Source: Bugula neritina
Taxonomy: Eukaryota > Animalia > Bryozoa
DNA: 64,000 bases
Direction of reading: 5' to 3'
Assembly: GCA_964035545.1 (NCBI GenBank)
Contig: OZ037769.1
Span: forward strand, 5,127,929-5,191,928
Below, in pieces: positions 160-51,900 of the stretch. The notes under the pieces were generated by a model. The model made no database searches and was not told where the DNA came from. It was given only the letters and a program-made list of their open reading frames with translations. A program made the position numbers and the translations under genes. How positions within the stretch are numbered: position 1 is the stretch's first letter; each line of letters starts with the position of its first letter.

Positions 160-3100
160 CTCTCACAGCAGAATCTCTACCAGTAGTTTTCCTCTCTTTT
201 TCTTCAACTCCAATGTTATGGTCTACATTACCCACAATCCTGTGCAAATCTTTGCTGACACTACCTAGTAAAGTCTTTAGACTGCTTGCCTCTTCCTAGA
301 GCAGATAAAACCATCTATGACCTACACCTTGCGCTAGAGAACTGCAGTTTAGACCAGGCAAATCACACATTTACTAGAGACTTATGAATAAAAGTAAACT
401 AAAACATATTTTCTACTTGATTAAAGGGTAACACATTTAGGGTATAGTGAAGAAGATAATCGTCAGATATGTAGCACAGCAACTGAAAAATGGAGAGATA
501 TATTTGCAACAAATCTCTTTGTATGACTGCTTAGAACGTTTATGCCTTTCTTAACACGACTTATTGAGTGTGAAAGCGAGTCCCCCAAACCAGTACACAA
601 CTACACACCTACATTTCCCCCCTAAGACTGGTTAGTAATGCCTGCAGAAGCATCACAGGACGTGACATAATCAACATGACCTGCTCAATATATGTTTTAT
701 AAAATAGAAATATTTAGTACAATGTTTCACTAGACAGTAGAGAGATATCAAGCAATGACATGTTGGCAGAGTAACTTACATGTTTTCTATCCCTCTCAGT
801 GCGGGCACCCTGTAACTTCTCATTCAATAGACTCTGTTCTGACGTTAGCTTCTTCACAGCTTCTTCGCTAGACTCAAGTTTCTTAGTCAGGGACTCTACA
901 AGCAATCAAAAAAAAGTCTTGAAAATCTTTAATTAACTGCAGCATTTGACAGGTTGAGAGAAAAACCGACTAATTCAAACATGAATGTACCAACAAGTAT
1001 GGCTGACAAGCTGCCTATTTTCTATTTCCTCTGAGTAGACAATTTCAAAGGCCAAAACCACCAACTGCTGGTTTATCTATTCAACTGCAGGAAGTATGGA
1101 GAGCATTCACAGGCCAACTATGATACTACAATGAATAAAATCAGTTTATTCAGTAAATTCCTTTATAACTCGGATAATTTTACATTCGCACCATTTTGGA
1201 CGAGCAGAGTTTTCATTTCCTGTTCTACTCTAAGTCTATTCTCTTCACTGTGATCCAGTCGACTCATGACCTTGTCCAACTCTAGTACCGCCCCCTTGAA
1301 CATCACCACACCCTCGGCATTGAGGGAGTTGTCCGCATTTTCTGCTGACTCACCTTCCGTGTTGTCTGCCTTCTGCTTGCCGCGATTTCCTGCAACAATA
1401 TGCTGCCTAAGACTTTCAACTAACAGAAATATGCTGCCTAAGACTTTCAACTAACAGAAATATGCTGCCTAAGACTTTCAACTAACAGAAATATGCTGCC
1501 TAAGACTTTCAACTAACAGAAATATGCTGCCTAAAGCTTTTAATCAACAGAAATATGCTGCCTAAGGTTTTCAACACGAATGAAGATAAGATCAAAAGAC
1601 AAAAATTGGTTACAAACTAACAAATGAATAGAATTATAGCAGATATTTACAATATGAATTGCAAAGTCAGTGAAATTAATTTAGATGGTGAAACTAACAG
1701 GCAATTGGAAAATTGAAAGTAACTCAATTTCTTTGAAGCAATAAGTAAACACGTTGGAGATATTCAATAGCAGAGAAGCAAACCTTTGGCCAGCTCAACA
1801 ATGTCAAGGTCAACTTCAGTCTTGGCTTCAGTGACGGCATTTTCTGGTTGATCCGTTAATTTCCTGTACAGAATGACATTGTCTCTACCCTGAGGCGTCT
1901 TGAACTTCTGCACCAGCTCTCGCATCTGCATAATTTATATATATTTATATATGTATATATCAAGTGACATGGGGCAGCCGTGGTCTAGGGCATTTGCCTA
2001 GTAAGCACAAAGTCATGGGTTCGAGCCCCGACAAAGGCCATTGATGATGTTGAGAAGAGCATCCAGTCATAATTGCTCCTGTGCCACATCTGAATAAGTC
2101 CTTAGCCCGATTTAACAAAAAAATCCCTTCCATCAGGGGTTCTCACAGGGATGCTGACTATAAATTTGCGTGCGTTTATATCATAGAGAAAAGGTACAGA
2201 AAAACACACCACAGAACAAAAAGCATAGACAAAAGAATGTAGAGACTAATAAGTGCCAACATATACATGAAACATGCTAATAAAGTGGAATTGGCACAAC
2301 AAACTGATTGAATAAAAACGGCTCCACCTGGTGGAATCTTACCTGAGACCGGGAAACCTGTAGCCCCAGAGTGAAGAACATCTCCTCCAGATCCTTGTCT
2401 ACGATGTAACCAGTGTGAGTCGTATCATAGTACACAAACGCAAGGAGTGTTGCCTTATCTACTGTCACCATTTTACCAACACTCTCTGCATCTTCTTTCT
2501 ACACGAGTGGAAGAATGGAGCCAACAAGTAATGGAATTGCGTCCAAGGAATAGCGGTGCATTAAAATTAAATATGAAGTAAATTTCCCATGAAGGTTGTT
2601 CCAAAAACATGCAACTCTTAGCTATAACTCATTCAAGAGGGATTCCAATATATTGAGACAAATCAGCTCCAACACAAACATCGAAATATCTTTCATTATT
2701 TCAGGTATTAGCAAGCAAGTATAACAGTTATTTTAGCTGTGGTAAGTTTAAATCACTATTATGTTAAACGTAATGTTAGGACCAACTCATAAAAATAATT
2801 ACTGCTACAAAGAAATAAATGCAGCAAGAGTTAAAATTCCACCACAGCAAATACTCTGAACAATATCATCGCAAATTAGTGATTTCTCTAAAAGTATTAG
2901 AAATTAAAATTATCACAGACTCACCTTTCTAGATAACTTCTCAGTTCGTTCAGTCATGCTGCTGCTGAGACTCGACCTGTCATCTTCGTCGTCTGCTTCC
3001 ATCTTCTTCCTTTTCTTTGTCTACAAGAAGGAGAGGATATTAGGAGAGGATACTAGGAGAGGATACTAGAAGAGGATACTATAAGAGGATATTAAAAGAG

Positions 3101-6100
3101 GATACTAGAAGAGGATACTAGAAGAAGATACTATAAGAGGATATTAGAAGAGGATACTAGAAGAGGATACTAGGAGAGGATACTATAAGAGGATACTAGA
3201 AGAAGATACTAGAAGAGGATACTAGAAGAGGATACTATAAGAGGATATAGAAAAGGATACTAGGAGAGGATACAATAAGAGGATATTAGAAGAGGGTACT
3301 AGGAGAGGATATAAGAAGAGGATACCAGGAGAGGATACTAACCTCAGGCTCTATAGACTGGTCAAGTTCACTCTTATTACTCCCACCAGTTTTCTCAGTT
3401 TTGGAATCTTCCACAGTTGATCCTTTCTTGTCTTCTTCAGATTCTGTTGCGTTGCTCTCTGACTTCAGTTCAGCCTGGCAGAGTAAAGGTATGAGATAGA
3501 GTAATGCATAGTAATTCGCTAGTTTCTTTTTACAAAATCTGCTATGAAATATCATGAGATTCCTAAATCATATAATTCTGCAGAAGTATTGGCAATTGGA
3601 ACTTCCACTCAATGCTAAAGAGCAGTCAGTAGTGAATGATTGACCCAGAAAGTTAGGGTTGAATCAAATCAGGTAACAGAAGTATTGTATGAAATGCCAA
3701 AGAATAAAGTATGGCCTGTTTGAAAACTACAAGAAATTTCAAAAAAGTAATTTCATAATGCCTTCCCTACTAATAGGGAAGAAATCGAAGAATGTGAGCT
3801 ATTCCCTGGTTTTACCATTTGGATGTTAAGGATTGGAAACAGTAGAAATATGTTTAAAAATGAAATTACTTTGGGATTACTAATTTTCCAATAGAACTTT
3901 ATTTAATACAAGAAACTTTGAAATAGCCAAGTTAGTTAGGGGAGCTTGTATGAATCACAATCAACAAGTAGCTAGAATAGGCACACAACTCCAGTGTAAC
4001 CTGATAGATCTTGGCTGCCTACTTCCAATGTTCATAAACACCCTATTTGAGTCTTCGGATAGGGTGGCCTAGAAGATATGAAAACAGCAAGAGAAGACAA
4101 CTACCTTTGCACTATCTTTAACTTCAGCTTTTTTAGAGGCTTCTAGTTTCTTTGCCATCTGCTCGGTTTTCAGCTTCTTGTAGATGGTGAAGCCGAAGTC
4201 CCTCATCAACATTTCGTTGAATGACTCGGCAAAAAGAGACACCTGCAACATTTAGTTAGAGACCATCAGTCTTATGAGCTAGCAACATTGAATACAATAT
4301 AGTATTTACTACTTCAACTTCTGTACAACACCTCTCTTAGCACTGCGAGTTGGTAACATCTAATATAATTATAGTAAACTATTTCAATTTCTATATACCA
4401 ACTTTCTTAGCGCTACAAGGTGGTAACATTTTATATAATATTTACTACTTCAATTTCTGTACAACACCTCTCTTAGCCGTGTGACCCACCTCAAAGGAAT
4501 GCTCTTTGTTGTCCTCGGGTCTATAGTCCAACAATAGACTGAGACTCATGACAGAACAATCAAACTTCCCATTCTTAGCTGATCTACAAAGAGAACACAA
4601 CTCCATGGTTACATATATATATGTATATTGTAATTATGCAAATTCAAAACCAATAATGCTTTGGGTGAAGTAAGTGCTTAAAATATGCTTTTGAGGAGTG
4701 AAAATATAATAGTATGGGAAAAGCTGAGTTGAGTTAACAAAGGTATAGACCAGGGCTGTCCACATTTATGTGGCCCTCGAAGGCATAAAAGATAAAATTA
4801 TTTTTCACAGTATACATGAGATAGAATGAAAAATCACATTTAAATGTCTTATTTATATACATGCTACAAAACATGCAGCCTGCAGAAATTTTTGAGACTT
4901 CATTGTGTAATGATTCATAAGAATTTGGACTAAAGTAATTTAAAAGTTACTAATGCTGTGGCCCTCAGCTCAAGCTAAAGCTTACAATGCGGCCCTCACC
5001 ACCTGTATATTCCCTTTCAGTGACCCTTGGTCTGAAAAGGTTGGACACCCCTGGTATAGACCAACAGGCAGCCAAAGTGCTAAACTCTGTAGTGGAGAGA
5101 TAAAAACATCAGAGTATGAAAATGTAGACACTGATGACTAAGTGAGAGGGGACAATTCTATATATGACTAAGAGAGAGGGGACAATACTACGTATAACTA
5201 AGAGAGGGGACAATCCTACATCTGACTTTAAAGAGAGGAAAACCTGTTGGGGTGAACCAAGATGGTTGGCTCGGGAGGGAAGACGTAACACCGCTCAAGA
5301 CGCGCTCTCAACCTCTCCAAGTCTTTAGCTCTCTTTTCTTTTTCCTCTTTAGTTAACTCTGGAGCTTTTTCCTATCAAATTAGTGAAACAGATATTTTAT
5401 CCTGCGTATCAAACAAAAATTAAAGTTAGTAATCAATATTTAACCTAACAAACACCACCAATAAAAGAACTTAATCAATCAATTATCAAAAGAAAATGAT
5501 AAATTTGCAGTTTACAGCTTGTACTGGTTACCAAACAAGAAAAATCACTCATATGTACCACCAAGTGGTGCCTTACCAAAGAGCTACAAAACTCTGACAT
5601 GATACAGTAAGACACATACCTCAGGTTTGTCCGGCTTGGCAGCCCCAGGTGTGCTTGCCTTGGCAGCCCCAGGTGTGCTTGCCTTGGCAGCCTGTTCTTC
5701 ATCAGCCTTCTTTTCCTCTGTAACTATTGACTCATTGCTAGCTGCTTTGTCACCGTCCCCTTCCTTCTTTGCCGTTTCCATAGTAATCTCTGTAGATTTT
5801 TTGTCGTCTACGGGGTCAGCAGTAAGAGCAGGTTCCCCTGTCTCCTCCAGCTTTTCATCTTCTTCCATTTCATTCTTCAACGCTTTTGATAGCTTCAGCT
5901 GTAGCTGGGATTTAAGACCCTTGCAAGAGATACCACGAGCCTCCAGCTCTGTCCTCAATGCAATCACCTGAGAGCAATCAGCAACAGGTTCTATGACACT
6001 CTACGACATTCTATGACACATGACATTCTATGACACTGGCACTCCATGACACTTGGCACTCTATGACACATAGCATTCTGTGACACTTGACATTTTGTGA

Positions 6101-9100
6101 CACATGGCATTCTATGACACATGTCATCATATGAAACCTGGCATCCTGTGACACATGACACTTTAGGACACATGACACTATGTGACACAATATTTCATGG
6201 CATTGCGACATTTGACAGCCTATGACACATGACATCACATGGCACCCTGTCTCAAATGACATTATCTGACAGTGAAATACATAAAATTCCATCACCTATG
6301 ACATCCTGTGACACAACGCATTTTACTACACTCTGATATGCAGCGCACACACACTAACAAGTAGAGTTTTGTAAAGCTATGTTTTAGTATGAGCTTCAAT
6401 TAGCTTAATAAACCGGTAGAGATAGGCAGGTATAGCATACGCAATTACATAATTTAGTATGCAAGCAAATTTCTAGCAAGATGTTGAGCCGTAGGCTTCT
6501 TGACCAACTACCAGTCCACACTCTAAGCACCAAGAAAAATATGCTTGCAAACTGTCCCAATTAGAAAAAACAACAGAACAACATGCAAGAAGGGACTTAT
6601 AGAAGTTTGAAATCTCTCAGCTACGGGACTTCTGTTTTAGAATATGTGTCAGAGAAAATTCACTGTCATAAAAAATCACCAGGAGTGGTTGAAATTCGAA
6701 ATAAGGGCATATAATTAATTGATAATCATGCATTAGTAGCCATAAGAAACCTGTACGATTAAGTAGGTGCATGAAACCGAATCTAGCGAGAATGGAAAGT
6801 CATCAACCTCTGTAATAGAGTTAACATGATTGCTAATGTGTAAATAATCACAAACTAAGCATATAAACAGGCTACTACTGCATAAACGTTACCTTCATGG
6901 TCTTTGGGTCGAGTTTTGACCAATGACTTGGCTCCACTTTGGCCAGTTCTTCAGTCCCTTCACCACCTTCCACTGTCACATCCATTTCTTCATCTGCTTT
7001 TTCCTCCGTTGACTCATTCACACTATCGTCAGCATTAGCAGAGGTATTCAGTGTGTTTTTCTCCTCGGACACTGAATTCTTGTTGCCTGGTTTATCGTCC
7101 TTACATGCTGCCTCTCCAGAAATAGCAGCGGCATCCTACAGAATGGGGATGAAAGATTAATAAATGCATTTACCTATCGGTTAAACTAAATTAAAAAGCA
7201 AATGACAATCATATTGCACTAAAAGCAGAGGTGTGTTAGGTGCCATCTGTACTGGCAGCAGTGAAAAATATATGAGTGGTCTTTAATTTTAGGAATTGTC
7301 CTCCCATAATGTCGGTGAACTAAGCTCAGTATGGAAGTGTCCCTCACTCAATCTAAAATGCAAAACTAACACAAAACTGGATGGAAGACGCCTCACTCAA
7401 CTGTTAACAAAGTCTGAAAATTAAAAGCTCAATCAATAATAAAAATCAGTGCCTGTGACTGGCAGGTCTGTGGCATCTGGTTGCGGGAGGGGGCGGCAGC
7501 CGTCTCGTCTTTTCTAGGCTGCTCCTCTTTCGGAGTAACTTTGAGTAAAAGACTACGTTTATAAGCAGCTTGCAATGCCAGATAATCCATCATAGCTGGA
7601 ACAACACTCCAAATATCAGGAAGAAACATGACTACATGCTCTGTGTGCTCGGCAATTGTCTTCCCTTTGTGCACTTCTTCAGCTCGCAGGTAACTTATGT
7701 CAACAAACCTATACCTGTGTGCAATAACCGCACGGAAACAATAACACTAGGTTAGAATAGTATACATCCAGTACATAGAACATCAGGAAGCCCGTGTGTT
7801 ATAAATCAACAGTGCACAGAAAAACTGCATAGCTGAACAAATAATGTTAGATATATTCTCTACAGAGAAAAGGCACATCAGAGAGTTCATATATAAGATA
7901 CATTGAGAGTGAAAAGCCTGATTTACAAACGTACCACTGAGTGCAAGCAGAGAGGTCTATGGCAGTGAGAGCCTTAGTGGTGCGTATAGCTGTGTTGATG
8001 AGCACCCTCGGGTCATTCACTGGATCCGCCCCGTCCAAACTCGGGCTCCACGGGCCTCCAATAGCCAGTGGTTCATTCTTAGCCCTCATTCCTACTAGAA
8101 AATGAAGCAGCCTTGTGGGGTGTATAAAATCTCCTTCTCTCCCATCCTCGGCCAAAGAGCAGCACTGTTTGTAGATTTCATCAATCGAAGGTTGAGCTAA
8201 CAACATTACCTGAAGAGAAGAACAGGTACTTCAATGAGATAGATGTCAACAGGTGTCAGTGTAAATACAAGTGCATACAGGAGACAAACACAGAGGAAGT
8301 GAGCGGAGCTGAGAGTTTAGTACTCCATGCCTGATGGTATAGCTGGCAAGTTTGTCGACCATGTGTATGTATTTGTATCATTAGTAAGATCATATGTATG
8401 TAACTTTAACAAGTTCTTATATGCTATTACAGTGTTTAGCCTACAGTTGTGTAAGTTACAAGCTTCGCAATAACAATTTATATCACAAAGTACCAAAATA
8501 AACCAACAAATAGCTTTTGACAATTTATTAAACAAACAGATTTAAACGTTACTTGATTAAAATACAAATGAAATCAATCTAATTTCATACTCACAGTAAT
8601 TCCCTAAATGTATTTAACAACTTAAACTCGCGCAAGTTTATAGTCCCTATCCTTGTAAGAAACCCCTGGAGGAAAGGGTTTTTAAAAGCATGTAAGGACT
8701 TATTCATATGTGGCACAGGAGCAATGTTGTACAGGAGCAATTATGACAGAATGCTCTTCCCAACATCACCAATGGCTTTTACTGGGGTCCGAACCCATGA
8801 CTTCACAACTTCCAAACAACCCCCCCCCCCACCAAACCACCATTAATCATGCAGTTACAGACGCCAGCTCACCTTAGCCGAGTACCTGTAATCAGCATCG
8901 GGAGGGTCCACTGTATCGGGGAACGGTTCCAGTGGATCCACATCTCTGTGACAGATGTGGAACTTGGTGGCTGCCCCGAGACGCAGTCGTGAGTGAAGGG
9001 AGAAGCCGGTAGCCCAGTCCAGAGAGAGATGGAAGAAGTCACTAGGGATGTACATGTTGCTGTAACGCTTGCTGATGTCCAGCACTGTACAGCTCCGACT

Positions 9101-11798
9101 GCAACAGACACACCGACACAGGCTTGTAATAAGAAATACTTTCTAATGAGTTAGGATGGACCAGAAAACTGCACGGGAATCAGATTACAGATGAAGATTC
9201 TAAAATAGTTCATGCAAGTCATCAAAAGGAATATCTATGACTTAACAAATTAATATTTACACTCGACTTGGGTGTGTAGAATAAATATTTTACATCACAT
9301 GACTAAAGTGGCTGGCGAGCAGATCTGTGTCAAGGGCAATTTCAATATGATGCCTCAATAACGTTATTCCAATCAACATCCAAATTTCCAATACACTTTA
9401 TTAATTTTTCAATACCAAAATATCAGGTTCCAGAGCGCGTTGATTGATTAAAAAAACACAAGTATTACTGGATGATAACACTATAAACAAACAGCAAAGC
9501 TCTATGACAATTATATCTTCACAAACAGAACATATGATTAAATTCTTACGTGTCAAAAGACAGGGGAGAAATGTTGACGCTGTAGCGAGAAGTTGTGCGC
9601 CTTTTAGGACTTCTACTTCGGCTTTTAGCTTTAGGCGATCGTGATCTTCGTCTAGGAGGTGGAGATCTAGAACGCTTCCTCGGAGGGGGTGAACGCTGTC
9701 GCTCACTCGTGCGCTCATTTCTCCGGTCGTCTCGCCTATCTCTTTGGTCAAAACGACTAGAGGCAGACAGCAAATAAACAAGCAATTATTCTAACCGTGT
9801 TTTCTTTATGTCAACATGTAGCGTGTTGGATTACCCAGTAGCCCTGTGGTGTAATTGGTTAGCGCGCCTGCTTGCTAGCCGGAAGTCCGTGGTTCAAGCC
9901 CCAGTAGGCACAATTATATTACAAGCTATTTCGGCCCTTAGTGAAGTGTGTAGTATTTTTGGTATTAAAAACTTATTAAAATTAAGTTAACGAAGCCAAT
10001 TTTACCAATATGTGAAAAAATAACCTGAAAACTATTAATTTTATATAGAACTATTCAATATATTCTATCCACAATAAACCAACAACATCGAGACCAACCT
10101 CGATCGACTACCACCACTAGAAAGACCGTCGGACCGTGAAGGCGCCATGACGGTTTTCTGCATCAGTTTGGGAATAGTTGAGGAAGGTGTTGAGCTGTAA
10201 GCGGGTCGGGATGGCTGCTGCGGTTGATGTGCAGCCAGGTGGTGCATCTGAATCTGTCCCATACCTGAAGTAGAACAAAGATTGTATAACCAGCACGTAG
10301 GAGTCCACAGAAATTAAACCCTGCCTGAGATAAAAGTTGATCATGATGCAGAACCACATACTGATTAGTTACAACAAAATGATTTTACTGATGATTTATT
10401 ACATTCACATTTTATGTATGCTACTCAAAAGGTTTTCAAACATAATGTCTTTCAAAGTTTTATTGGCTAAACCCATATGCACCAGCTACTTCTTTCAGTG
10501 TAGCCTGTAGACATTGCTAGAACCATGAAATTAAAACCAATGAAAGCAATAAAACTAAAATGTTCAAATATTTGACACTAAATGTTGAGAGAAGGCATTG
10601 AAGGTCATACTTGGTGAAATAAACTCACCTTGGCTGTGCACAGGGGTGATGGATTGCGCAGACAGCTGAGCTTGCTGCAAGGCGGTCAGCTGCTGCACAG
10701 CAGACACCTGTTGAAAGATTTGTTGTGGGACGTGTGAGGGCTGTGCAGTGTTGGGGAGCAGCTAAAATTAAAAGGTACTAAAGCTATTTCATATAAATAA
10801 TTACTATACAAGATAAAGGTGCAGAACATTTGATAATAATTAACTATAACCAAAATATACTAACATGTTGGGTCATAAATACTTTTATTAGATATAACAC
10901 GCAGACACCACGCTCTACCAGTTTGAAAGTATACCTGTATTCGGGTGGCGTTCCATTTGAAAGGCATGTTAGCATTATAAGAAGCTTCAACCAGCACACG
11001 ATCACCCAACTTAGGAACACCTCCTTTGCACACACTATAAATGAGAATATAAAGTCCTGTGTCAGATTACATGCAAGATCAACATGCAAGACCAGCATTA
11101 ACTAGTCTAAATGGAAGGAAAATATCACATTGTGAAAGACAAAAAAGTGAATATTTAAGAAAGTCTGCTAAAATGTGCTTTTGATAAAATTAGAACTCAG
11201 ACTGGCATTCACCTGGTTTGAAAAAATACGTCCTCATCCACAAACCCAAAGTTGTCGCCGACTTTAGTAATAGTGCCCGTGAAAACCCTTGGCTTGTTTG
11301 TAGCGTTTGCAGCAGTTTGCTGTAAAAGTAGTAGCACATAATTTATTATTACAGCATGACATCATCAGTCCTTCAAATGTTAAAATTCAAATGGCAAACA
11401 TTTTAATTTTAATACTTAATGAATCAGAAGCAGGACCTGTGTAACTGCTTACAACAACTATAAAAACTACATTTTCTTAGTCTAAAATGTTTTTAGCACT
11501 AAAATCTAAGGACAAAATCAAGTACAAAACTACTATTAGATTGATATGCAAAGGAGTATTGAAACATATAAATCACCTGTCCAAGTGTTTGCGCAGCCGA
11601 ATAGGGGTTCGTGGTAGCAAAACCATATCCAGTGGCACTTGCCCCTAATATAAAAGCAAACTTAATCACCTCAAAACTGATGCTAAAAATCTTGCATACT
11701 ACACAAATGTCAAAAGTAGAATAAATTAGCCTGAGTATATGCATACCTGTTTGCCTAGCCCATGGAGGATTACCACCCGCTCCACCGCCGAAATTCAT
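160..11798 (-). CDS. CCAR1: Cell division cycle and apoptosis regulator 1 (CCAR1/CARP-1 family), multi-exon; 3' end may continue beyond the window start
   Basis: N-terminus MNFGGGAGGNPPWARQ; S1-like domain (RVFTGTITKVGDNFGFVDEDVFFQ..KLGDRVLVEASYNANMPFKWNATRIQ; exons 11213-11319, 10935-11034); RS-rich exon ~9550-9756; DBC1 domain (VLDISKRYSNMYIPSDFF ~8873-9099; LAIGGPWSPSLDGADP ~7936-8208); SAP domain (LRTELEARGISCKGLKSQL ~5620-5967); LLDYRPEDNKEHSFE|VSLFAESFNEMLMRDFG (~4490-4583, ~4095-4242); EF-hand-like LLAFVYYDTTHTGYI (~2343-2500); coiled-coil exons ~1193-1420, 780-895, 160-295. GT-AG boundaries with consistent phases were checked for the first and last exons. Confidence 0.93.
1404..1575. 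repeat. 31-bp tandem repeat (~5 copies) at a CCAR1 intron/exon junction
   Basis: Unit TGCTGCCTAAGACTTTCAACTAACAGAAATA is repeated and degrades toward 1575. Confidence 0.9.
1971..2180 (+). mobile_element. tRNA-derived SINE copy
   Basis: GGGGCAGCCGTGGTCTAG A-box-like head, GGTTCGAGCCC B box, central GAAGAGCATCCAGTCATAA block and tail shared with five or more other copies in the window. Confidence 0.85.
3030..3340. repeat. ~13-bp purine-rich minisatellite (GAGGATACTAGAA)n in a CCAR1 intron
   Basis: More than 20 degenerate tandem units are visible. Confidence 0.9.
4751..5053. mobile_element. Non-autonomous hAT (Charlie-like) MITE
   Basis: Termini CAGGGCTGTCCA...TTGGACACCCCTG; perfect 8-bp TSD GTATAGAC at 4743-4750 and 5054-5061. 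Confidence 0.88.
5990..6320. repeat. Degenerate TGACACA-core minisatellite in a CCAR1 intron
   Basis: Repeated (CTA/TG)TGACACA(TG) units; these create the spurious Cys/His-rich ORFs 5991-6295. Confidence 0.85.
8625..8845 (-). mobile_element. tRNA-derived SINE copy
   Basis: Reverse complement of the family at 1971-2180, with a small internal duplication (ACAGGAGCAAT x2). Confidence 0.8.
9817..9935 (+). mobile_element. Truncated TRIM-like element: 107-bp LTR-like unit with an internal tRNA-like cassette, followed by a PBS-like site (Helenus-like)
   Basis: TGTAG...TTACA ends (9817-9923); tRNA-like segment 9841-9910 with A box TGGTGTAATTGG and B box GGTTCAAGCCC; followed by AGCTATTTCGGC. The 19-mer TATTACAAGCTATTTCGGC is identical to the LTR end plus PBS of the element at 42734-42752. 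No second LTR is seen. Confidence 0.6.
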
Positions 11799-13450: not shown

Positions 13451-14785
13451 ATAAACAATTTGGTTTTGTGAGTATTTCTGTTGAATTAGCCAGTGTTAAA
13501 ATTACAGTGATCAACTCAATTGATTAGTATATTGAAATAGGAAACAATAGATTTAATTAAAACATAAAACTGTGTAGCACAGCTGTAATCAAAAGGGCAA
13601 TGAAGTTTTTGATAACTTTACCACACAGAGGTTATGGTTACCTGAGAAGAGATTGTTCAATATCATAAAACATTTTAATTTTTGCTGTGCTTAAACATTT
13701 GCTCGAATGTTTTAGTTTGAGCTAGTTTTGCTACTGTGTTTGACACTCCTTTTGAGCTATGACAATTTAAACTTGGATGATGATAAAATCTTTATAGCAC
13801 GAATTTATATCTATAAATATCTGAGAGCTTTTCACTGGTCAAATGATAAAATACAATTCCTATGACCACTTCCATAAAAGCCAAAACTATTACAAACCTT
13901 GCTTATGTTTGTTCACTTAATCTTTAGAATTCACACTTCAAGTATAAAACATCCATTGTTATAATTCACTGGATTTGTTAAATGTTATTATTATTAAAGT
14001 TACTAATCTAACTTCTACTCAGTATTTATGCAACAGGCTTTGTGAGTGTCTATGCAGAATATTTTAATAGTAAATTAGTTCATAGTGAAAAAGAAATCAG
14101 AAATAATACTTTATAGTTAATGAAAGGAACTGAAGAATATGATATTAATCGAATAATAATATTAATAATAATATTCACACATCATTTGAAACTGGCCATC
14201 TTGCGATGAATCTTCGCCAAAATGTTAATGATTCACATCTACCTGCCAGGTGAGATAAAAGCTAACATCTTTTTCATAGGAATTTGTTAATTTAGTATAC
14301 ATGTGGCTTAATTGCCTTGTTACTGGATAGCACGCTGTGGTATTACAAAGAAGTAACTGTATGAATTACATATTATGTGATCATCCAACTATCTGTAGGT
14401 CTAGCTTATATCACATCTTGAAACTTGTATCTACATTACAATGTTTTTGAAGGTAGAAAATTAGTGCTTTTTATTTATTTTAATTGTTATTATTTCACTG
14501 ATTTCTCTTTATGTTGTTACAGGTAAGCGGTCATTTTGTTTAAAGTTGTATTCTAGCCTAAAATTTCATATGGTATTACTTACTAACTAAATGTTTGCTT
14601 TCTGACTTACTAACTATAAACAAATACTATAAGAATAACCTAGATACATATGCATAGGTATTTGAGACATTGGTTTTGGCTATTAGTTGCTCTGTTGTCT
14701 TTGTAGGGGTTCGTTTAGCTCCCCAAAGGAGCGAACAGAAAGTGCAAACAGCTGGCTACGCTTTCCGACTCGACGACAGGAAGCG

Positions 14786-16903
14786 ATGCAGTTTGCTAGT
14801 TTGAGCGCAACTCCACATGACCTCTACAACTCCGCAATAAGTCTGCATCGGCATTCGCCTTCAACCTCATATCTTGACCTCTCATCTGTGTTACCTCATC
14901 ATGATGCAATCGATCATTTCATCACAACAACAGAAAACTCTAGATTTGAGAAAAAAATTGACCTAGTTCCAGACAAAGATGGCATTGTTTCCCACGACTG
15001 CTCGAGCGGAACCTGTGAGCGCATTTCTATTAGCGTCAGCGGCCTGCTTTATGAGACACAAATAGGAACGCTGAACAGGTTTCCAAACACATTACTTGGA
15101 AATCCTCTTAAAAGACGTGAGTTTTGGGACGCGAAAAGAAAATGCTATGTTTTCGACACCCACCCGCCAATGTTTAATTACATTTTGTATTATTACCAAA
15201 GCGGAGGAAAACTGATTCGCCCCGAGGACATACCGGAAGATATATTTTTAGAAGATACTGCATTCTATGAACTTGGAGACGACACTATCGCCGAATACAA
15301 ATGGCGGACTGGCTTCCTACCAGAGCCTGACATGATTCTTCCGGAAGTAATGTGGAAAAGAAAATTGTGGCAACTTTTAGAATATCCTAGCAGCAGTACA
15401 TTGGCTAAAGTAGTTGGAATTATCTCTCTTGGAATTATTTTAATTTCCATAGTAAATTTCTGCTTAGAAAGCATTCCATCATTTGAGAAACAGCTTTGTA
15501 TTAATGATACTGACTCTGCTTTCACCAATGAAGATGGAGAAGTTGTGATGCTAGAGAAGCAGAACTATGGCAGTGTTTTCTTTGTAATAGAATGCGTCTG
15601 CGCCTTCTGGTTTACTCTAGAGGTAATCTTACGGTTCATTTCTTGTCCGGTCAAAAAGCAATATCTCAAAAACTTGATGAACCTCTTTGACATCTCAGCC
15701 ATTGTACCGTTTTATGTAATAACATTATTTGTGGTCAGCACTGGAACTTGTGACCACTCGAAGAGATCAAGCATATCAATTGTTTTTCTTCGAGTTCTGC
15801 GCTTGTTTCGAGCATTCAGAATATTTAAACTAACTAAGCATTCTCGTGGCATGCAAATTCTGGGTCTTACAATTAAGCAGAGCTTAAAGGAGTTATCTCT
15901 CTTCGCTATATTTCTTGGAATAGCCATCATCTTCTTCTCGGCGTCAGTATACTATGCAGATTTGTGGGACACTCAATCGGCAAACATTGCTAGCATTCCT
16001 GATGGGTTCTGGTGGGCTATTGTAACTATGTGTACAGTTGGGTGAGTACGATGAAACTAACTTACTAGTTAGCACAAGGTGCTTCCAGTTAAGTACTTAC
16101 TTTTGTCATACTCAACTTTCTCTTGAAGGTTTGTAGCATAGTACATGATCATAATAATCGAAATGACTTCAAGCATTTACATTATAAAAGAGTGTTTTTT
16201 GGTAGACTTTTCACTTTGAAAAAATACTAAATAGAAAAGTGTATATGATGCACATAGCACTTGATCTCTAAAGCTTTGACATTACTTGTAATGAGCATAA
16301 ACGGACAAAACAAACTGATTACAGTAGCCAAATGTTGACACTGTAATAGATATGTGCGTTTTAACTCACAACTACAGGTCACAAATTTTGTTGCTTTGCA
16401 AAAATATAATTGCTTTACAGATCTGTGTCCTAGGTGTAGTCGTGAAATGTGAACAATTCAAAGCCTGTGTTTAGTTGGCAATCACACCTTTCTAACTCTT
16501 TACAAAAATATTTAATAAAACCTCCTTGCATGCAGGCATCTATTATGTGCTCTATTACAGTGTGCCACAATACTCTATAGTGTTGGATTGTGCAGCCCAT
16601 TGCTATGCATTGTAATTCGAGTTGTAAATGTGATGCAGGTATGGTGATAAAGTTCCAAGTGGAATACTCGGGAAGTTAGTAGGATCTGTATGCGTTGTGT
16701 CAGGAGTTATAACTATCGCTCTACTCGTGCCGGTAGTTGTGTCCAACTTCTCAACATATTACAGTCACGATCCACCCAAGACGTCTAAAGTGTGTATTGT
16801 CGACTCAGATGGAAATATAAAATCAGTATCTGTCAACCATGTTAAAGTGGAAAAGGAGAAATCGCCTAAAGAGACTAGTCCTAATGGATGTGTTCTTTCC
16901 TGA
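14786..16903 (+). CDS. KCNA: Voltage-gated potassium channel alpha subunit, Shaker/Kv1 family (divergent)
   Basis: Exons 14786-16041 and 16639-16903 (GG|gtgagt...tgcag|G TAT GGT GAT rebuilds TVGYGD). T1 domain with Kv1-type ILYYYQSGG; S4 [27 protein letters not shown]; pore [19 protein letters not shown]; S6 [16 protein letters not shown]. An acceptor at 14706 implies an upstream exon, so the true start could lie further 5'. Confidence 0.93.
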
Positions 16904-42470: not shown

Positions 42471-42771
42471 ATTCAATGAATAAATAGCATGTATTATAAT
42501 TATAAATATTTACTCTTCTAATTTGTTATTGTACCTGTAATGTGCATGACATTGCATCATGCAGTTGTGTAACTGTTTTGTAAATATTATTATAGTTGTG
42601 TGGTTTTCCTTTATGTCCTAAATCCCCTTTATCTTTGTGGTTTATATATATGTTGTCTGTCTTAGAAATGTGTTTGTAGTGATTAGTTGTGCTTTCCAAA
42701 TAAAGATATTTCAGTGAACTTTAAGTATAATACTATTACAAGCTATTTCGGCGTTTATCAGTGGTAGAAAT

Positions 42772-43539
42772 ATGGCAGTCAGGGTGTCGGATCTAGTGAA
42801 AAATTATGAGGACAGTTCGGTTAATGGAGACTTTACTGAGTGGTGTGAGAAGCTGGAGCTAGTAGCAAAGTTGCAGAAAGTAGAAGATTTTGCATCGTTT
42901 CTGCCATTATTCTTGGCAGGTCCAGCATTTACTGTGTATAAACAGTTTTCAGAGGATGTTAAATCAGACTTTCCGAAGTTAAAGGCTGAGCTGATGACGT
43001 CATTCTGTGAGAGCAGTTACAGTGCTTACGATCAACTTAGATCAAGAAGTCTAAAAGAAGGTGAAGCTGTAGATGTCTATGTAGCTGACTTGAGAAGGCT
43101 AGTAACACTGATAGGTCAGAAAACTCCTGAGCCTTTACTGAAATGTGCATTTATTGCTGGTTTGCCAGTAGATGTTGCTACACAAATAAAATCTGTCGCT
43201 GCTGTTGAAAAGTTGAGCTTAGAAGAGTTAGTTGGTAGAGCTAGGATAATGTTATCAACAGCAACTGTAGACACTTTGACACCCTGTGCTGCTGGTAGGA
43301 ATGTTACTAGAAAGTGTTTTAAATGTTTTTCACCACACCATTCACCTTGGAACTGTAACACTGAGAAAAGTCAAAATGGGAACATGAATGCTAATCGAAA
43401 TGCCAATAATCATCAACAGTACAGAAGATGGAGCATTCAGTGCTATACTTGTCAGGCTTGGGGGCATATTAGTAGGAATTGCCCACAGGGAAATGGCGGT
43501 GGGGCAGTGTCAGCACCGGATGCTCACCCCAACAACTAA
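42772..43539 (+). CDS. Gag with two CCHC zinc knuckles
   Basis: 255-aa ORF from an ATG just after the PBS; CFKCFSPHHSPWNC and CYTCQAWGHISRNC. Confidence 0.88.
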   Translation: MAVRVSDLVKNYEDSSVNGDFTEWCEKLELVAKLQKVEDFASFLPLFLAGPAFTVYKQFSEDVKSDFPKLKAELMTSFCESSYSAYDQLRSRSLKEGEAVDVYVADLRRLVTLIGQKTPEPLLKCAFIAGLPVDVATQIKSVAAVEKLSLEELVGRARIMLSTATVDTLTPCAAGRNVTRKCFKCFSPHHSPWNCNTEKSQNGNMNANRNANNHQQYRRWSIQCYTCQAWGHISRNCPQGNGGGAVSAPDAHPNN

Positions 43540-46437
43540 ATTACAATGCGGTGCTACCACTAATAACTTTAAATGTAAACGGTGTGAGTATAAAAGCACT
43601 AGTAGATAGTGGTTGTGAACAATCAGTAGTTTTAGAAAGATTTTGTAATCAAATAGGTGTTGCACCATGTGGTCCTGAACAGAGGGTTTTAATGCTAAAT
43701 GGACAAATAACTAAATGTAGGGGTGAAGCTCAATTAGCAGTGCAGGTTAGGAATCGTCGTCTCTCTGTAAAATGTTTAATAGCTCCAATGTTAGTAGGTG
43801 GTTGCTCTTTAATTTTGGGAATGGATGCTATTAGTAAGTTAGGTGGTGTGACAATTACTAGGAATAAGCAAGTGATGTTTCCTGCAGTTGAACCAACAAC
43901 AGAAGTAGGTAAAGTTAGTGCTGTTAGTGTAGGTGTAGGAGTAGATAGATTTGATAAGACATTAACTAGTGATAGTAAAGGTGAACTTTTTGTTAGTGAC
44001 ATTGACTTTAATGCTAAATTTGATGGTAAAAAATGGACAGTGAGGTGGAAATGGGAGAATGGTGAGCCGATATTACAGAATCAATGTGGTCAGTATGCTG
44101 TAAAAGACAAATTCAAACAGAGTTACCATGAGGAGATTCAGCAATGGATTAATGATGGATGGCTACAATTGTATGACAATAAATTGCATGGTACAGTCAC
44201 TGGAATTGTACCATTGATGGCTGCTGCCCAGCCAAATAAACCAACCCAGGTCCGACCTGTTATGGATTATAGTAGAGAACTCAACAAATACATCTACAAT
44301 AAGCCCAGTGGTGACACTGCCATTTGTCAGGATAAATTGAGGAAATGGAGGTTACTTGGTGACAACGCCAGTTTGCTGGATCTAAGAAAAGCTTTCTTAC
44401 AACTTCATGTGGATAGTGATTTGCAAAGGTTCCAAGCTGTACGGTATGAGGGTAAGATCTATGTAATGACTAGGTTAGGTTTTGGTTTAAATGTGGCACC
44501 TAAAATCATGTCAAAAGTTTTATCTACAGTCCTGGCTCAAGATGACACTATACGCAAAGGTACTGATAGTTATATAGATGACATTATAGTTGATGAGACT
44601 GTTGTTTCGGTAGAAGTAGTTCGAAATCATTTGTTGAAGTTTGGTTTGGTAACTGAAGAACCAGAGAAACTGAGTAATGCTAGAGTTTTAGGGCTAAGGG
44701 TTAGAGAGGAGTGGAGAGGTGGCATGTCATGTTATAGCTGGCAGCGTGATGGTGAGCTCCCATCTCTTGAGTCAAATAGCAACATAAGCAAGCGAGAGCT
44801 GTTTTTCGGTGTGTGGTAAACTGACTGGACATTTTCCTGTAGCAGGGTGGCTTAGGGTAGCATGCAGTTTTATGAAAAGGTTAACGCAATCAGATATGTG
44901 GGATAGTGCTGTGTCTGACCATGTCCAAAAAATGTTGTTAGAGACATTAGATAGAGTTGCAAAATCTGATCCTGTGAAAGGAAAGTGGCATGTGGCCAAT
45001 ACTGATACAGGCACTGTATGGTGTGATGCAAGCAGTTTGGCAATAGGGGTGTCTGTGCAAATAGATGGCCAGATAGTGGAGGATGCTTCGTGGATGAGAA
45101 AACCCGATGATTGCACCCACATCAATGTAGCAGAGTTAGAAGCTGTTAATGGCTGTTCATGCCATTAAAAGTTAATGGCATGAATGAGATGATTGTGAAA
45201 CGTAGGTTAGGTGTTATAGCAGAACTGATAGAAGAGTACAAGCTGTCATTAAAAATACATTTAGTGAAATCAGCTGAGAATTGGGCAGATGCTCTGACAC
45301 GAGTGAGTTCAGCATGGCTTAGTAAGCGAATAACCTGTGCAAGTGTAGGTGTGGCAACTCCTGATGTAGCTGACCTGAAGGATGAAATAGCCAAGCTGCA
45401 TGGAATGCATCATTTGGGCAATGAAAGAACATTTTATTTAGCTAAATGTAAATTCGGAGGAGGCATAGACAAGGAGTTAGTTGAAAGAGTAGTTAAAGAA
45501 TGTGCTGTGTGTAGGAGCATTGACCCTTCTCCAGTGCAGTGGGAAAGAGGAGTTCTGGAGGTCAATGAGAATTGGTATAGGCTGGCAATGAATGTGAGTC
45601 ATTATAATTGTGTACCATACTTGACTTATCGACTGTGGTCCAAGTAGATTCGCTGTGTGGATAAAGTTGCAGAATGAGACTGCTGACTCTGTGGTAAATC
45701 AGCTACTAAAGGTGTTTCAGCAGCGTGGTCCACTGACAGAGTTACTGTCAGACAACGGACCGTGTTTCAGAAGTGACAGATTGGAACAGCTACTTAGGCA
45801 GTGGGATGTACAGCACATATTTAGCTGTGCTTATAGAGCATCTGGGAAAGGTGTCATAGAGTGCAATCACAGGACTATAAAAAGAATGGCAGCTCGAACT
45901 AGATCTTCAATAGAAAATACGGTAATTTGGTACAACAACACCCCAAATAGTAACAATGTAGTACCCTCACAAAGTTTATACAGCTATGATGTAAAGCTGC
46001 CTAAAGTATCACCATCAACAATAGGCAAGCCCACAGACATTACAAAAAACCCCTACAATGTAGGAGACAAAGTTTATGTAAAATCTGTGAATTCTAAATG
46101 CACAACTGCATGGCCACAGGGCATGATTACCAGGGTTGTGTCGAACACTGCGGTGATGGTAGATGGTATGACACGACATATAAGTGATGTCCGACTGGCT
46201 AATACAGGGAACAGGGAAAGTGGTGACATTTCGTCCAGTACAAAACAGCAACCTCAGGTACATGGAGACATTGAAATTAACCTGAGGTCAGATAATGCTG
46301 ATGAGGATGCAGATGCAAATAGAGTTGTGGATGGTGAAAATGTTGAGGAAGGTGAAAGTGTAGACGAAGTGATTGACCGACCAGTGAGAGATAGACGGCC
46401 ACCTAGGTGGTTAGCAGACTTTTATGTAGATGACTAA
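43479..46437 (+). pseudogene. Pol (PR-RT-RNase H-IN) with frameshifts and an RNase H deletion
   Basis: Overlaps gag in the -1 frame with a GGGAAAT slippery-like site at ~43488; ALVDSGC, LDLRKAFLQ, YIDD, WCDAS, HINVAELEAV, H-H-C-C and LLSDNGPCF motifs spread over four ORF fragments. Confidence 0.9.
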
Positions 46438-46929
46438 ACGTTTTTCTTTTTTGTTTTATTATATATCTGTTTGATCTGATAAGATCAGGGGGAAATGTAA
46501 TGTGCATGACATTGCATCATGCAGTTGTGTAACTGTTTTGTAAATATTATTGTAGTTGTGTGGTTTTCCTTTATGTCCTAAATCCCCTTTATCTTTGTGG
46601 TTTATATATATGTTGTCTGTCTTAGAAATGTGTTTGTAGTGATTAGTTGTGCTTTCCAAATAAAGATATTTCAGTAAACTTTAAGTATAATACTATTACA
46701 GTACCCAATTTGTAACCAACCGTTGGTATAATCAACTGTGTAATATCAAACTGTTGGTGAGTTGATAATTTTTGTTTATTGGTTGTTATTTCGACTTCAA
46801 ATGAAACCCACACATCTTCATTTTTGCAGGTCTCGTGGTGCTTTATTCTACAAATTATAATACAGACTAACCTGTGCTGATAAAACAAACGTTGCACTTG
46901 CTATAAGTTTCAAGAAATTAGCTTCCATT

Positions 46930-48998: not shown

Positions 48999-51900
48999 TA
49001 TTTTATGCAGTATACTATATCTATGCTATTATAATATATAATAGTATATTATCTATACTAATGTATGTAATGCAGAGTTTTTGTTATGGACTCCCTTTAA
49101 GTATAGATGTGCCTTCATCGTCCAGTGTTAGTTAAATTTGTTTTAAATGGGTTTCTTAATAAATATGGCTCCATTATTCTTTTGTATAAGTTGATAATTT
49201 AGAATTTCCAGTTCGCAATGTTTGCTCTTTTTGCTTTAGCTATTTATTGAAAGATAAAAAGTTTTGCCGATTCGATTTTAACCTATTGTGTTTTTGATGT
49301 TCATCTTTTACCTGCTGAAGTTTGCAAAATATAATCAAAATGTATGTGTGGATTCATAAGTAAAGTTAATAATTTATTCTACCTTTGTAGGTGAAGTATG
49401 TGCTCTTTCTAAACTGTGGGGGCTGTCTAGACTTGGTAGATATACTACAGCCAGATCCTGAAATAGTCTTCTTCATACTAGACAGGTAAGTTAACATCCT
49501 GGTATATGTATTATACTGTGTATATTACTATATATTACTATACACTAGTATATGCATTATACTGTGTATATTACTATATGTTACTATACACTAGTATATG
49601 TATTATACCGTGTATATTACTATATATTACTATACACTAGTATATGCATTATACTGTGTATATTACTATATATTACTATACACTAGTATATGCATTATAC
49701 TGTGTATATTACTATATGTTACTATACACTAGTATATGTATTATACCGTGTATATTACTATATATTACTATACACTAGTATATGTATTATACTGTGTATA
49801 TTACTATATATTACTATACACTAGTATATGTATTATACTGTGTATATTACTATATATTACTATACACTAGTATATGTATTATACTGTGTATATTACTATA
49901 TGTTACTATACACTAGTATATGTATTGTACTGTGTATATTACTATATGTTACTATACTCTAGTATATGTATTATACTGTGTATATTACTATATGTTACTA
50001 TACACTAGTATATGTATTATACTGTGTATATTACTATATGTTACTATACACTAGTATATGTATTATACTGTGTATATTACTATATGTTACTATACACTAG
50101 TATATGCATTATACTGTGTATATTACTATATGTTACTATACACTAGTATATGTATTATACTGTGTATATTACTATATGTTACTATACGCTAGTATATGTA
50201 TTGTACTGTGTATATTACTATATATTACTATACGCTAGTATATGCATTATACTGTGTATATTACTATATGTTACTATACACTAGTATATGTATTGTACTG
50301 TGTATATTACTATATATTACTATACACTAGTATATTATGTATTATACTGTGTATATTTAATAAATTCATATTAATGAAAGGCACTTGTAGCAGTGAATGA
50401 AAATGCTTGCTGCTGGTGTGAATTCTTTTAATTGAAAATGCTGTCAATACGAACCTATTTCCTTCATTTACTCGAAATTTCACTTAGCTAATAAAATCAT
50501 TCTGTAATACCAAGATAATGTCACATTTAGCTGAAACTAACTTGGTCATTTTACTTAATTTAGTACACACTGCATATCTCTAGTTTTTAGCTATTTTTTA
50601 CAGTTAAGCTACTAATATATATAGTTTCTTGCACAAAACTGATAAAATAATGACAGCTAAATAAGCTAGGTTTTTTCTAATTTTGCTTGATTTCCTATGT
50701 TTTATCCTATTTTCTTAGTAACTTTGGTTGTTCGGGCTCGATGAAAAAAGCATTACGCCCTCACACTCAAATTACTAAATGCAAGAAACTATATGCATTA
50801 GTGGCTAAACTGTGAAACCGCTAAAAACTAGAGATACGCAGTGTGTACCAAATTAGGTAAAATGACACAACTCGTCTTTTTATGGGATTTTATCTGCAAT
50901 TCTACCTGCCATTTAGTAGGTTAATAGAATTCACGTTTGAGGCTGACAAATTGTGTATTATTGATATACTCAACGAGTTCTCCATTCACTCTGTTACTAT
51001 ACATAAATGTAGCCATCGACCTATCAGTGTAGAGAACATATACAATGCTGTGCAGACGAGAATAGTGTTACGACAAGAAGAAGTTGACCAAGATATACCT
51101 GACTATGAAGATGTGTTCAGAGATGATGAGGTAAACTTCAACAACATTCTAGTGTATATTCATATACTAATATCTCTCTCCTAGTAATAGTGTCTTTCTC
51201 CTTATAATAGTATCACTATACTTGTACTACTTTCTCTTAGTATTAGTATCACTATACTTGTACTACTATGACTATCACTATACTTATACTAGTATCACTC
51301 TACTTATACTAGTATCACTATACTTGTACTGATGAATGTCGTAATACTACTCTATATCTATGTTAACAATATTCTACTCCTTTGTGCTAGCAATATTTTT
51401 GTGTTTTGTTTCGATATTGACAGAGCATAATTGTACTAGTCATAACTTTTACTCGTGTCAGTGACTGTGATTTACTTGTGTTACTCAACAGTCTGAATCT
51501 GAGGGAGATGACTCCGATATCGATGAAGATAGCAGGAAAAGACAGAGATTTGATGCCAAGTATTTGGAAAAACGCCAAGAAAAGCGGGCCTGGAATGATA
51601 ATAGGTACAGTGTTTCTTATTGGATGCATATGTTGGTTTTTATTCTTCGGGCAAGTCTAATACAATGTCAGTATTTTGAAGTGCATCTTTTACTTTGTCA
51701 TGTTAATTGTGAAAACATTCTTTTGTATCTTAATGACTTTCAATTCTATTTACGATGCAATTAACAGGAAATGGAGCAATTGTAATAAAATACCTTTTAT
51801 ACATTTTTATAAATTAAACCTGATACCAAATTCTACCATAATCTACTATCTTCTAAACTGCATCCACTTCAACAGCATATTTCTATATATAAATATTTTA

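Follow-up and report, generated by a model that had tools for sequence, protein, structure and literature searches.

A probable Helenus-type miniature retrotransposon of Bugula neritina with tRNA-like long terminal repeats and a primer-binding site complementary to the 5' end of tRNA-Phe

A 64,000-nucleotide stretch of the genome of the bryozoan Bugula neritina (contig OZ037769.1 of assembly GCA_964035545.1, positions 5,127,929 to 5,191,928) was analysed and is called the window here. It holds two sequences that are treated in this work. One, at 9817-9955, is a dead, truncated and old copy of a short element, consisting of a 5' long terminal repeat (LTR), the primer-binding site (PBS) plus about 20 nt of internal region. 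The other, at 42536-46700, is a Gypsy-like element, called Gypsy-1. The family of the short element was followed through the genome. With good confidence, the best explanation, including the mechanism proposed below, is that the family consists of non-coding miniature LTR retrotransposons about 330 bp long and is a Helenus-type TRIM (terminal-repeat retrotransposon in miniature).

An original prediction, made from the letters of the window, had described a 107-bp TGTA...TACA unit with a tRNA-like cassette. The unit and its core were present (Table 1). A covariance model of the family matched exactly one place in the 64-kb window, which shows, in line with that description, that the TRIM unit is not the common repeat of the window. 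The core of this copy has decayed. It scored 14.7 bits against the Rfam tRNA model, under the 29-bit threshold, and ARAGORN called no tRNA in the copy. No further TRIM piece (polypurine tract (PPT) or 3' LTR) was found in the window, and the target site duplication (TSD) of the copy was not checkable.

The prediction also held that the end of this LTR and the following PBS match those of Gypsy-1 over 19 of 19 bases, and this was confirmed. The 19-mer TATTACAAGCTATTTCGGC occurs at exactly two sites in the window, 9917-9935 and 42734-42752. Allowing up to three mismatches gave no extra site in the window. The chance expectation was 0.02 per window, and a chance match was rejected on this ground. 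None of 67 other copies of the family ends in the TATTACA tip of the window copy. The match is exact because the window copy has a private substitution, which accounts for two of the bases. The majority form of the TRIM shares 17 contiguous bases with Gypsy-1 (TTACA and the PBS). As predicted, the remainder of the two LTRs is unrelated, and BLAST gave only a 22-nt match between the LTR bodies.

A 144-nt query was run against the 216-Mb genome and returned 368 first-look candidates and 51 scored matches. At most loci, the first match spanned the LTR, the PBS and about 20 nt, and a second match about 225 nt downstream covered the LTR only. Alignment of 18 loci gave the architecture of the full element. 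A 105-nt LTR (TGTAGTG...TTTTACA) is followed by the PBS AGCTATTTCGGC, a non-coding internal region of about 115 nt, the PPT AGAGAACTGGGTGGGA and a second LTR, with a total length of about 330 bp. The genomic copy in L020 was used as the TRIM reference.

The genome was also sampled by the PBS word alone. Among 97 instances read, 67 belonged to the TRIM, each with an exact PBS. Of these 67 copies, 56 had two cleanly ending LTRs, with lengths of 262-347 nt, mostly about 330 nt. The PPT or a close variant of it preceded most 3' LTRs, and the LTR pairs were up to 100% identical. The TSDs of the 56 two-LTR copies were 5 bp long. They were perfect (5/5) in 23 copies and matched at 4/5 positions in 11, whereas shuffled flanks gave 0.5 perfect cases. 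This length is that of the GTACC duplication of Gypsy-1. The right LTR tip was TTTTACA in 43 of the 67 copies and TTTTTCA in 11. The unpaired units inspected in the flanks were solo LTRs with both tips and TSDs (e.g. L018, 5/5), and tandem arrays of the form LTR-internal-LTR-internal-LTR occurred. Some compound loci (L005:1273-1806, L105:619-1374 and L026:1203-1866) contained three or four LTR units, arranged either in tandem or with mixed orientations. The family is thus neither single-copy nor made up only of units with SINE-like tails. Two LTRs, a PBS, a PPT and many copies agree with the predicted TRIM with tRNA-derived LTRs of the Helenus kind (SINE, short interspersed nuclear element).

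The tRNA-likeness of the LTR was clearer in the sister copies. Many sister LTRs passed the Rfam tRNA threshold over the full model, with 30-45 bits. ARAGORN called tRNAs with a 6-nt anticodon loop in sister LTRs, or Cys-GCA in one element. The covariance model was built from 13 LTRs, and it matched 133 LTRs in the loci examined. When the 133 LTRs were aligned to one cloverleaf model, 84.7% of the cells were paired. Compensatory changes were found between subfamilies; at one anticodon-stem pair, UA occurred 65 times, CG 32 times and UG 17 times. The compensatory-change signal was greater than in all 500 shuffles and in the slid controls. The A and B boxes were intact and correctly spaced in the TRIM LTRs.

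The most conserved stretch of the LTR was the anticodon arm GCTTGCAAGC, with a conservation of 0.95 versus a mean of 0.84 (positions 9866-9880 in the window; e.g. L021:1520-1590). Its loop is one base shorter than that of a tRNA, which turns it into the self-complementary palindrome TTGCAA. The loop hexamer was retained in 103 of the 133 LTRs, and the B-box word GGTTC in 89. The shape of this palindromic arm resembles that of retroviral kissing-loop dimerisation sites.

The arm was used to estimate the size of the family. The motif TGCTTGCAAGCCNGAGG from the anticodon arm had 413 exact occurrences in the genome and 905 with up to one mismatch, and its control had none. At one mismatch, the motif matched 86 of the 133 sampled LTRs. 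From the 905 matches and this detection rate, the genome holds roughly 1,400 LTR units. The U3 word ACCCAG stood at the right distance upstream of 201 of the 413 exact arm motifs, compared with 34 of 51 in the sample.

Runs of T were mapped in 26 young copies. Of 50 runs of at least four T, 48 were located at the 3' ends of the two LTRs, whereas shuffles predict about 37 scattered runs. This layout fits a unit that is read by RNA polymerase III (Pol III) and stopped at the LTR end. Because A and B boxes are present and the T-runs are confined to the LTR ends, we infer that the LTR is transcribed by Pol III. The LTR could then be divided as follows. The 23-nt left tip, TGTAGTG...ACCCAGTG, would be U3. 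The near-complete tRNA-like cloverleaf with its A and B boxes would serve as the Pol III promoter and as R. The run of four or five T and the final ACA would form the terminator and U5.

The PBS was then compared with the tRNA genes of the genome. Five tRNA-Phe(GAA) genes have GCCGAAATAGCT as their first bases, and the PBS is its exact reverse complement (12/12). For a PBS, a match to the 5' end of a tRNA is unusual, in place of its 3' end or anticodon loop. The pairing runs from the base after the terminal CA of the LTR to the first base of the tRNA. The PBS always directly followed an LTR ending in CA, and the similarity ended after 12 nt. The base after the PBS differed between families: the TRIM has C, the Gypsy-like families have A or G, and the others A or T. 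By eye, the PBS was exact in about 16 of 19 aligned copies, which are about 80% alike overall. The genome contains the word CAAGCTATTTCGGC 103 times and the reversed control of this word not once. No sequence complementary to the PBS was found in the LTR. The best LTR match to the 12-mer had 4-6 mismatches, no better than in shuffles. Tf1-type self-priming and priming by the tRNA-like part of the LTR itself were both ruled out by this lack of complementarity.

A relative of Gypsy-1 was found at 908-5048 of a metagenome contig (L193; ERZ1740065 NODE_11436). It is 4141 bp long and has 45-53% protein identity to the Gypsy-like element of the window. Its LTRs (176-177 nt, 97% alike) are unrelated to those of Gypsy-1, and its TSD, GAGTC, is also 5 bp. 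The identical 12-nt PBS is present at 1084-1095, directly after ...CTACA. An identical site within changed surroundings indicated that the PBS is conserved across organisms. In a metagenome scan with a 15-mer, all but one of the matches listed (at least 120 stretches) looked like chance matches in unrelated, mostly high-GC contigs. Some of these contigs are labelled 'human gut metagenome'; they gave no match and were left aside.

The coding element of the window was examined as a possible source of proteins for the TRIM. Pfam searches found a domain set of the Ty3/Gypsy type, comprising Retrotrans_gag and zf-CCHC, an aspartyl protease, RVT_1 and rve. RVT_1 was below the threshold in the window copy of Gypsy-1 and above it in L193, where an RNase H-like domain was found as well. 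By its LTRs and TSD, gag, and pol domains in the order protease, reverse transcriptase (RT), RNase H (seen in L193) and integrase, Gypsy-1 can be assigned to the Ty3/Gypsy type at the level of the superfamily. There are about 13-16 siblings in the genome, each about 4.27 kb. The window copy is about 100 bp shorter, as its LTR starts are 3960 bp apart versus about 4060 bp in the siblings. In nine siblings, gag and the start of pol were open as far as the sequence was examined. A second TSD, AGTTA in a sibling, was also 5 bp. Gypsy-1 is a credible source of helper proteins.

Table 1. Parts of the truncated TRIM copy and of Gypsy-1 in the window
Feature	Position in window	Strand	Basis
5' LTR of truncated TRIM copy, TGTAG...TTACA, 107 nt	9817-9923	+	about 80% identical to LTRs of full genomic copies
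tRNA-like core of LTR: A box, degenerate anticodon arm, B box	9840-9912	+	family covariance model, 79 bits
TRIM PBS AGCTATTTCGGC	9924-9935	+	reverse complement of nt 1-12 of the tRNA-Phe(GAA) genes of the genome
TRIM internal-region remnant, about 20 nt; homology to full copies stops at about 9955	9936-9955	+	alignment with 18 full copies
Left TSD of Gypsy-1, GTACC	42531-42535	+	same 5 nt at 46701-46705
Gypsy-1 5' LTR, TGTAATG...TATTACA	42536-42740	+	205-nt direct repeat, 99% identical to 46496-46700
Gypsy-1 PBS AGCTATTTCGGC	42741-42752	+	in 12 of 15 sibling or related copies with LTR-PBS junction read
gag: Retrotrans_gag and CCHC zinc knuckle	42772-43539	+	Pfam
pol: protease, RT, DUF7047, integrase; reading frame broken three times, at about 44.8, 45.16 and 45.63 kb	43476-46435	+	frame map, Pfam
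Gypsy-1 PPT AAGATCAGGGGGAAA	46481-46495	+	read directly; CAGGGGGAAA also in two sibling 3' ends
Gypsy-1 3' LTR	46496-46700	+	99% identical to 5' LTR
Right TSD of Gypsy-1, GTACC	46701-46705	+	read directly

At least four coding families in the genome, Gypsy-1, Gypsy-2, family A and family B, have this same 12-nt PBS after their LTRs. The LTR of Gypsy-2 reads TGTAATGTTTG...CAACACAACA, and its DNA aligns with the start of the Gypsy-1 gag. Family A (L058, L060, L069, L083, L106, L107 and L110) has LTRs of about 410 nt, TGTGGGCT...GGTAACA. Family B (L061, L084, L087 and L088) has the LTR TGTGAGTTG...TTAACA. The LTRs of families A and B are unrelated, and each family has a gag-like open reading frame (ORF) distantly similar to the Gypsy-1 gag. 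At a further locus, L100, the same tRNA-Phe 5'-end PBS stands directly after ...ACA of an unrelated LTR, and no gag match was found there.

The LTR tips and the internal regions were compared among these families. The typical TRIM tip TTTTACA is one mismatch from the TATTACA of Gypsy-1 and also one mismatch from the TTTAACA of a family B copy. Over the last 14 nt of the LTR, the family B copy agreed with the TRIM at 10 positions and Gypsy-1, read directly, at 9. Similarity to the internal region of the TRIM beyond the PBS was not above shuffles, either over the 60 nt after the PBS in all families or over the 60 nt before the 3' LTR in Gypsy-1. One recombinant was found, in which the 5' LTR and PBS of Gypsy-2 continue into internal sequence of the TRIM, of which the first ~90 nt are present. 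Two segmental duplicates carry it, L089 and L090 (G000:C5, near 8.19 and 8.36 Mb), and such a structure would result from a template switch between RNAs packaged together.

Taken together, a replication cycle can be proposed for the TRIM. As it encodes no protein, it must depend on coding LTR retrotransposons for the proteins that copy and insert it, with integration making the 5-bp duplications. Its helper would be found among the Gypsy-like families with the same PBS and TSD length, and could be a single family or several. The first strand would most likely be started from a 5' piece of tRNA-Phe that has been cut after U12. When the second strand is made, copying would run off at the 5' end of this tRNA, and the PBS length of exactly 12 nt would follow from that. 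Both the identity of this primer and its cleavage after U12 are inferred. If tRNA-Phe is the primer, first-strand strong-stop DNA would be expected to be joined to GCCGAAAUAGCU.

Several observations weigh against parts of this interpretation, and they were considered together with the alternatives. An exact PBS followed an exact arm motif in only 24 of 413 cases. Much of this gap is explained by old copies, solo LTRs and a TGTTG-tipped subfamily, and the remaining units may include a SINE with the same head. One tRNA-like unit (L004:800-871, family model 61 bits) has neither LTR tips nor the ACCCAG word; it could be an LTR of much greater age, or belong to a SINE that shares the head. This unit, the tRNA-like head with A and B boxes, and the many unpaired units genome-wide are what a tRNA-derived SINE or a tRNA pseudogene with an incidental 19-nt match would offer. 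However, the sample is dominated by two-LTR copies with PBS, PPT and 5-bp TSDs, the inspected unpaired units are solo LTRs, the 19-mer is hardly expected by chance, and the conservation of the PBS is well above background. Such a SINE would be one unit that lacks terminal repeats and ends in an A-rich or LINE-related tail (LINE, long interspersed nuclear element). This was not what we found, and we rejected the SINE or pseudogene origin on structure as very improbable. The Pol III promoter raises other questions. The covariation signal is modest, and part of it is due to subfamily descent. The arm, and not the A or B box, is the most conserved part, which hints at a role besides or other than that of a promoter. 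The T4 run closing the 5' LTR should halt Pol III before the PBS, so that a full-length RNA would need read-through. The last two points would suit an RNA made by Pol II or by read-through, in which the arm hairpin with its TTGCAA loop serves dimerisation or packaging in helper particles. The loss of one loop base that creates the palindrome, and a loop kept more often than GGTTC, speak for it as well. On the other side, both promoter boxes are intact at the correct spacing, the body has been purged of T-runs, which are fixed at the ends of the LTRs as a Pol III unit predicts, and the related class Cassandra is reported with Pol III transcripts (PMC10886601). We consider it unlikely that the tRNA-like part is not, or not only, a Pol III promoter, and prefer the reading as a Pol III unit.

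The helper and the primer were weighed in the same way. The original prediction held that the LTR tip and PBS identify Gypsy-1 as the autonomous helper. Part of this stands. Gypsy-1 and the TRIM share the PBS, the 5-bp TSD length and TGTA...TACA ends, their 5' tips are similar (TGTAATGT in Gypsy-1 and TGTAGTGT in the TRIM), and both were recently active. However, the tip is not specific, since the usual TRIM tip differs from that of Gypsy-1 and the family B copy is equally close. The PBS is also found in Gypsy-2 and families A and B, all followed by gag-like ORFs. The regions after the PBS and before the PPT have no significant similarity, the PPTs differ, and the only recombinant seen involves Gypsy-2. 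Gypsy-1 is thus a good candidate but not the sole one, and its identification as the helper by tip and PBS is possible, though we lean against it. The evidence narrows the helper to a group with this PBS and 5-bp TSDs and not to one family, and in this respect the prediction went too far. For priming, the 12-nt site could be a true PBS used by another RNA, or the tRNA-Phe match could be a relic. No known enzyme step has been shown to leave a 3'-OH at U12, and limited full-text literature searches found no description of, or precedent for, priming by the 5' end of a tRNA. Against another primer, the complementarity is complete and extends exactly from the LTR edge to the first base of the mature tRNA. 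In addition, the PBS is kept in at least five families with unrelated LTRs and in the relative with about 50% protein identity, and the LTRs lack a self-priming sequence. Another primer is accordingly rather improbable in our judgement. Our widest proposal returns to the tRNA-Phe fragment. The TRIM, the at least four coding families and the relative with about 50% protein identity might all prime from the first 12 nt of tRNA-Phe, as a 5' fragment cut in the D stem, with the run-off setting the PBS length. All that the TRIM would have kept is the PBS, its LTR tips and a Pol III unit resembling a tRNA, and the palindromic loop of this unit may double as a dimerisation or packaging signal. We put this forward tentatively, as a combination that is a little less likely to hold in full than to fail in some part.

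Other features of the window were also recorded. Exons of a gene of the CCAR1/DBC1 family were found on the minus strand. They encode a SAP domain (5584-5964) and a DBC1 domain (7429-7671 and 7847-8203). The TRIM fragment is located just upstream of another open stretch, 9401-9781, on the same minus strand as these exons, and a CCAR1 setting of the fragment is plausible. A single long exon on the plus strand (14687-16045) carries a 452-aa ORF whose BTB_2 (T1) and ion-transport domains mark it as a voltage-gated potassium channel gene. About 24 units of a 46-nt tandem repeat occupy 49361-50488, 3 kb downstream of Gypsy-1.

The name for TRIMs with Pol III-type LTRs dates only from 2024, and most of their helpers are unknown. 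The family described here comes from a host group outside the published list and breaks the 4-bp rule of animal Helenus. It links a TRIM to a set of coding elements via a primer site that pairs with a tRNA 5' end. If true, priming by a tRNA 5' fragment widens the known ways in which LTR elements begin DNA synthesis. A sequence tag made of CA and the complement of tRNA nt 1-12 would then find such elements and their parasites in other genomes. Annotation pipelines would wrongly take hundreds of these LTRs for tRNA genes or pseudogenes.

SINEs have no LTRs, PBS, PPT or fixed 5-bp TSD, and they depend on LINEs. The TRIM is like tRNA-derived SINEs (SINE2) in having a tRNA-like head with A and B boxes and in being short, non-coding and abundant. 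Unlike them, it has LTRs, a PBS, a PPT and a TSD of fixed length. Cassandra and Ajax are TRIMs whose LTRs contain 5S rRNA-derived sequence. The likeness is that a small-RNA gene with an internal Pol III promoter lies in the LTR; a difference is that the small RNA here is tRNA-like.

For priming, two kinds of exception are known to us: copia and Ty5 use primers from the anticodon region, and Tf1 primes itself. In the half-tRNA priming of copia and Ty5, both of the Copia superfamily, the anticodon-stem region of tRNA-iMet is the partner of the PBS. As in these elements, the primer proposed here is a cleaved 5' portion of a tRNA and not its 3' CCA end. The differences are that the pairing partner here is the outermost 12 nt at the 5' end of tRNA-Phe, and that the elements have a Gypsy-type gene order. 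In self-priming of Tf1 and sushi elements, the 5' end of the element's own transcript (11 nt in Tf1) pairs with the PBS and is cut to give the primer. Here too, a short RNA 5' end at the PBS would need cutting, and Tf1 is a possible model for this cleavage step. The partner is different, being a host tRNA here, and the TRIM has no LTR sequence complementary to the PBS.

Half-tRNA priming of copia and Ty5 is also summarised in the paper in which Kojima named Helenus, or TRIMp3, in 2024 (PMC10886601). The PBS 12-mer and the word Phe were absent from that paper and its sequence file, in which a 12-mer split by a line break could be missed. The arm word GCTTGCAAGCC occurs in the published Helenus-1 LTRs of two cynipid wasps (Helenus-1_SyJa and Helenus-1_SyUm), as a word match only. 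Published animal Helenus elements have 4-bp TSDs, while fungal and plant families have 5 bp, and the animal PBSs correspond to 3' ends of tRNAs (Lys, Leu, Trp, Arg, His, Ile, Pro, Glu and Ser) (PMC10886601). The Bugula family differs from these animal elements in its 5-bp TSDs and in a PBS that pairs with nt 1-12 at the 5' end of tRNA-Phe and not with a 3' end (PMC10886601). Bryozoa is not among the six animal phyla listed for Helenus (PMC10886601). In other respects the agreement is close. Like Helenus, the TRIM is non-coding, falls with its ~330 bp within the published length range of 311-1263 bp, and forms solo LTRs and tandem arrays; like that of other animal Helenus elements, its Gypsy-type helper is proposed from a shared PBS (PMC10886601). 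By all structural features of Helenus, namely short direct LTRs around a non-coding internal region, a tRNA-derived LTR with A and B boxes, a tRNA-complementary PBS, a PPT and a TSD of fixed length, the family can be placed in this group.

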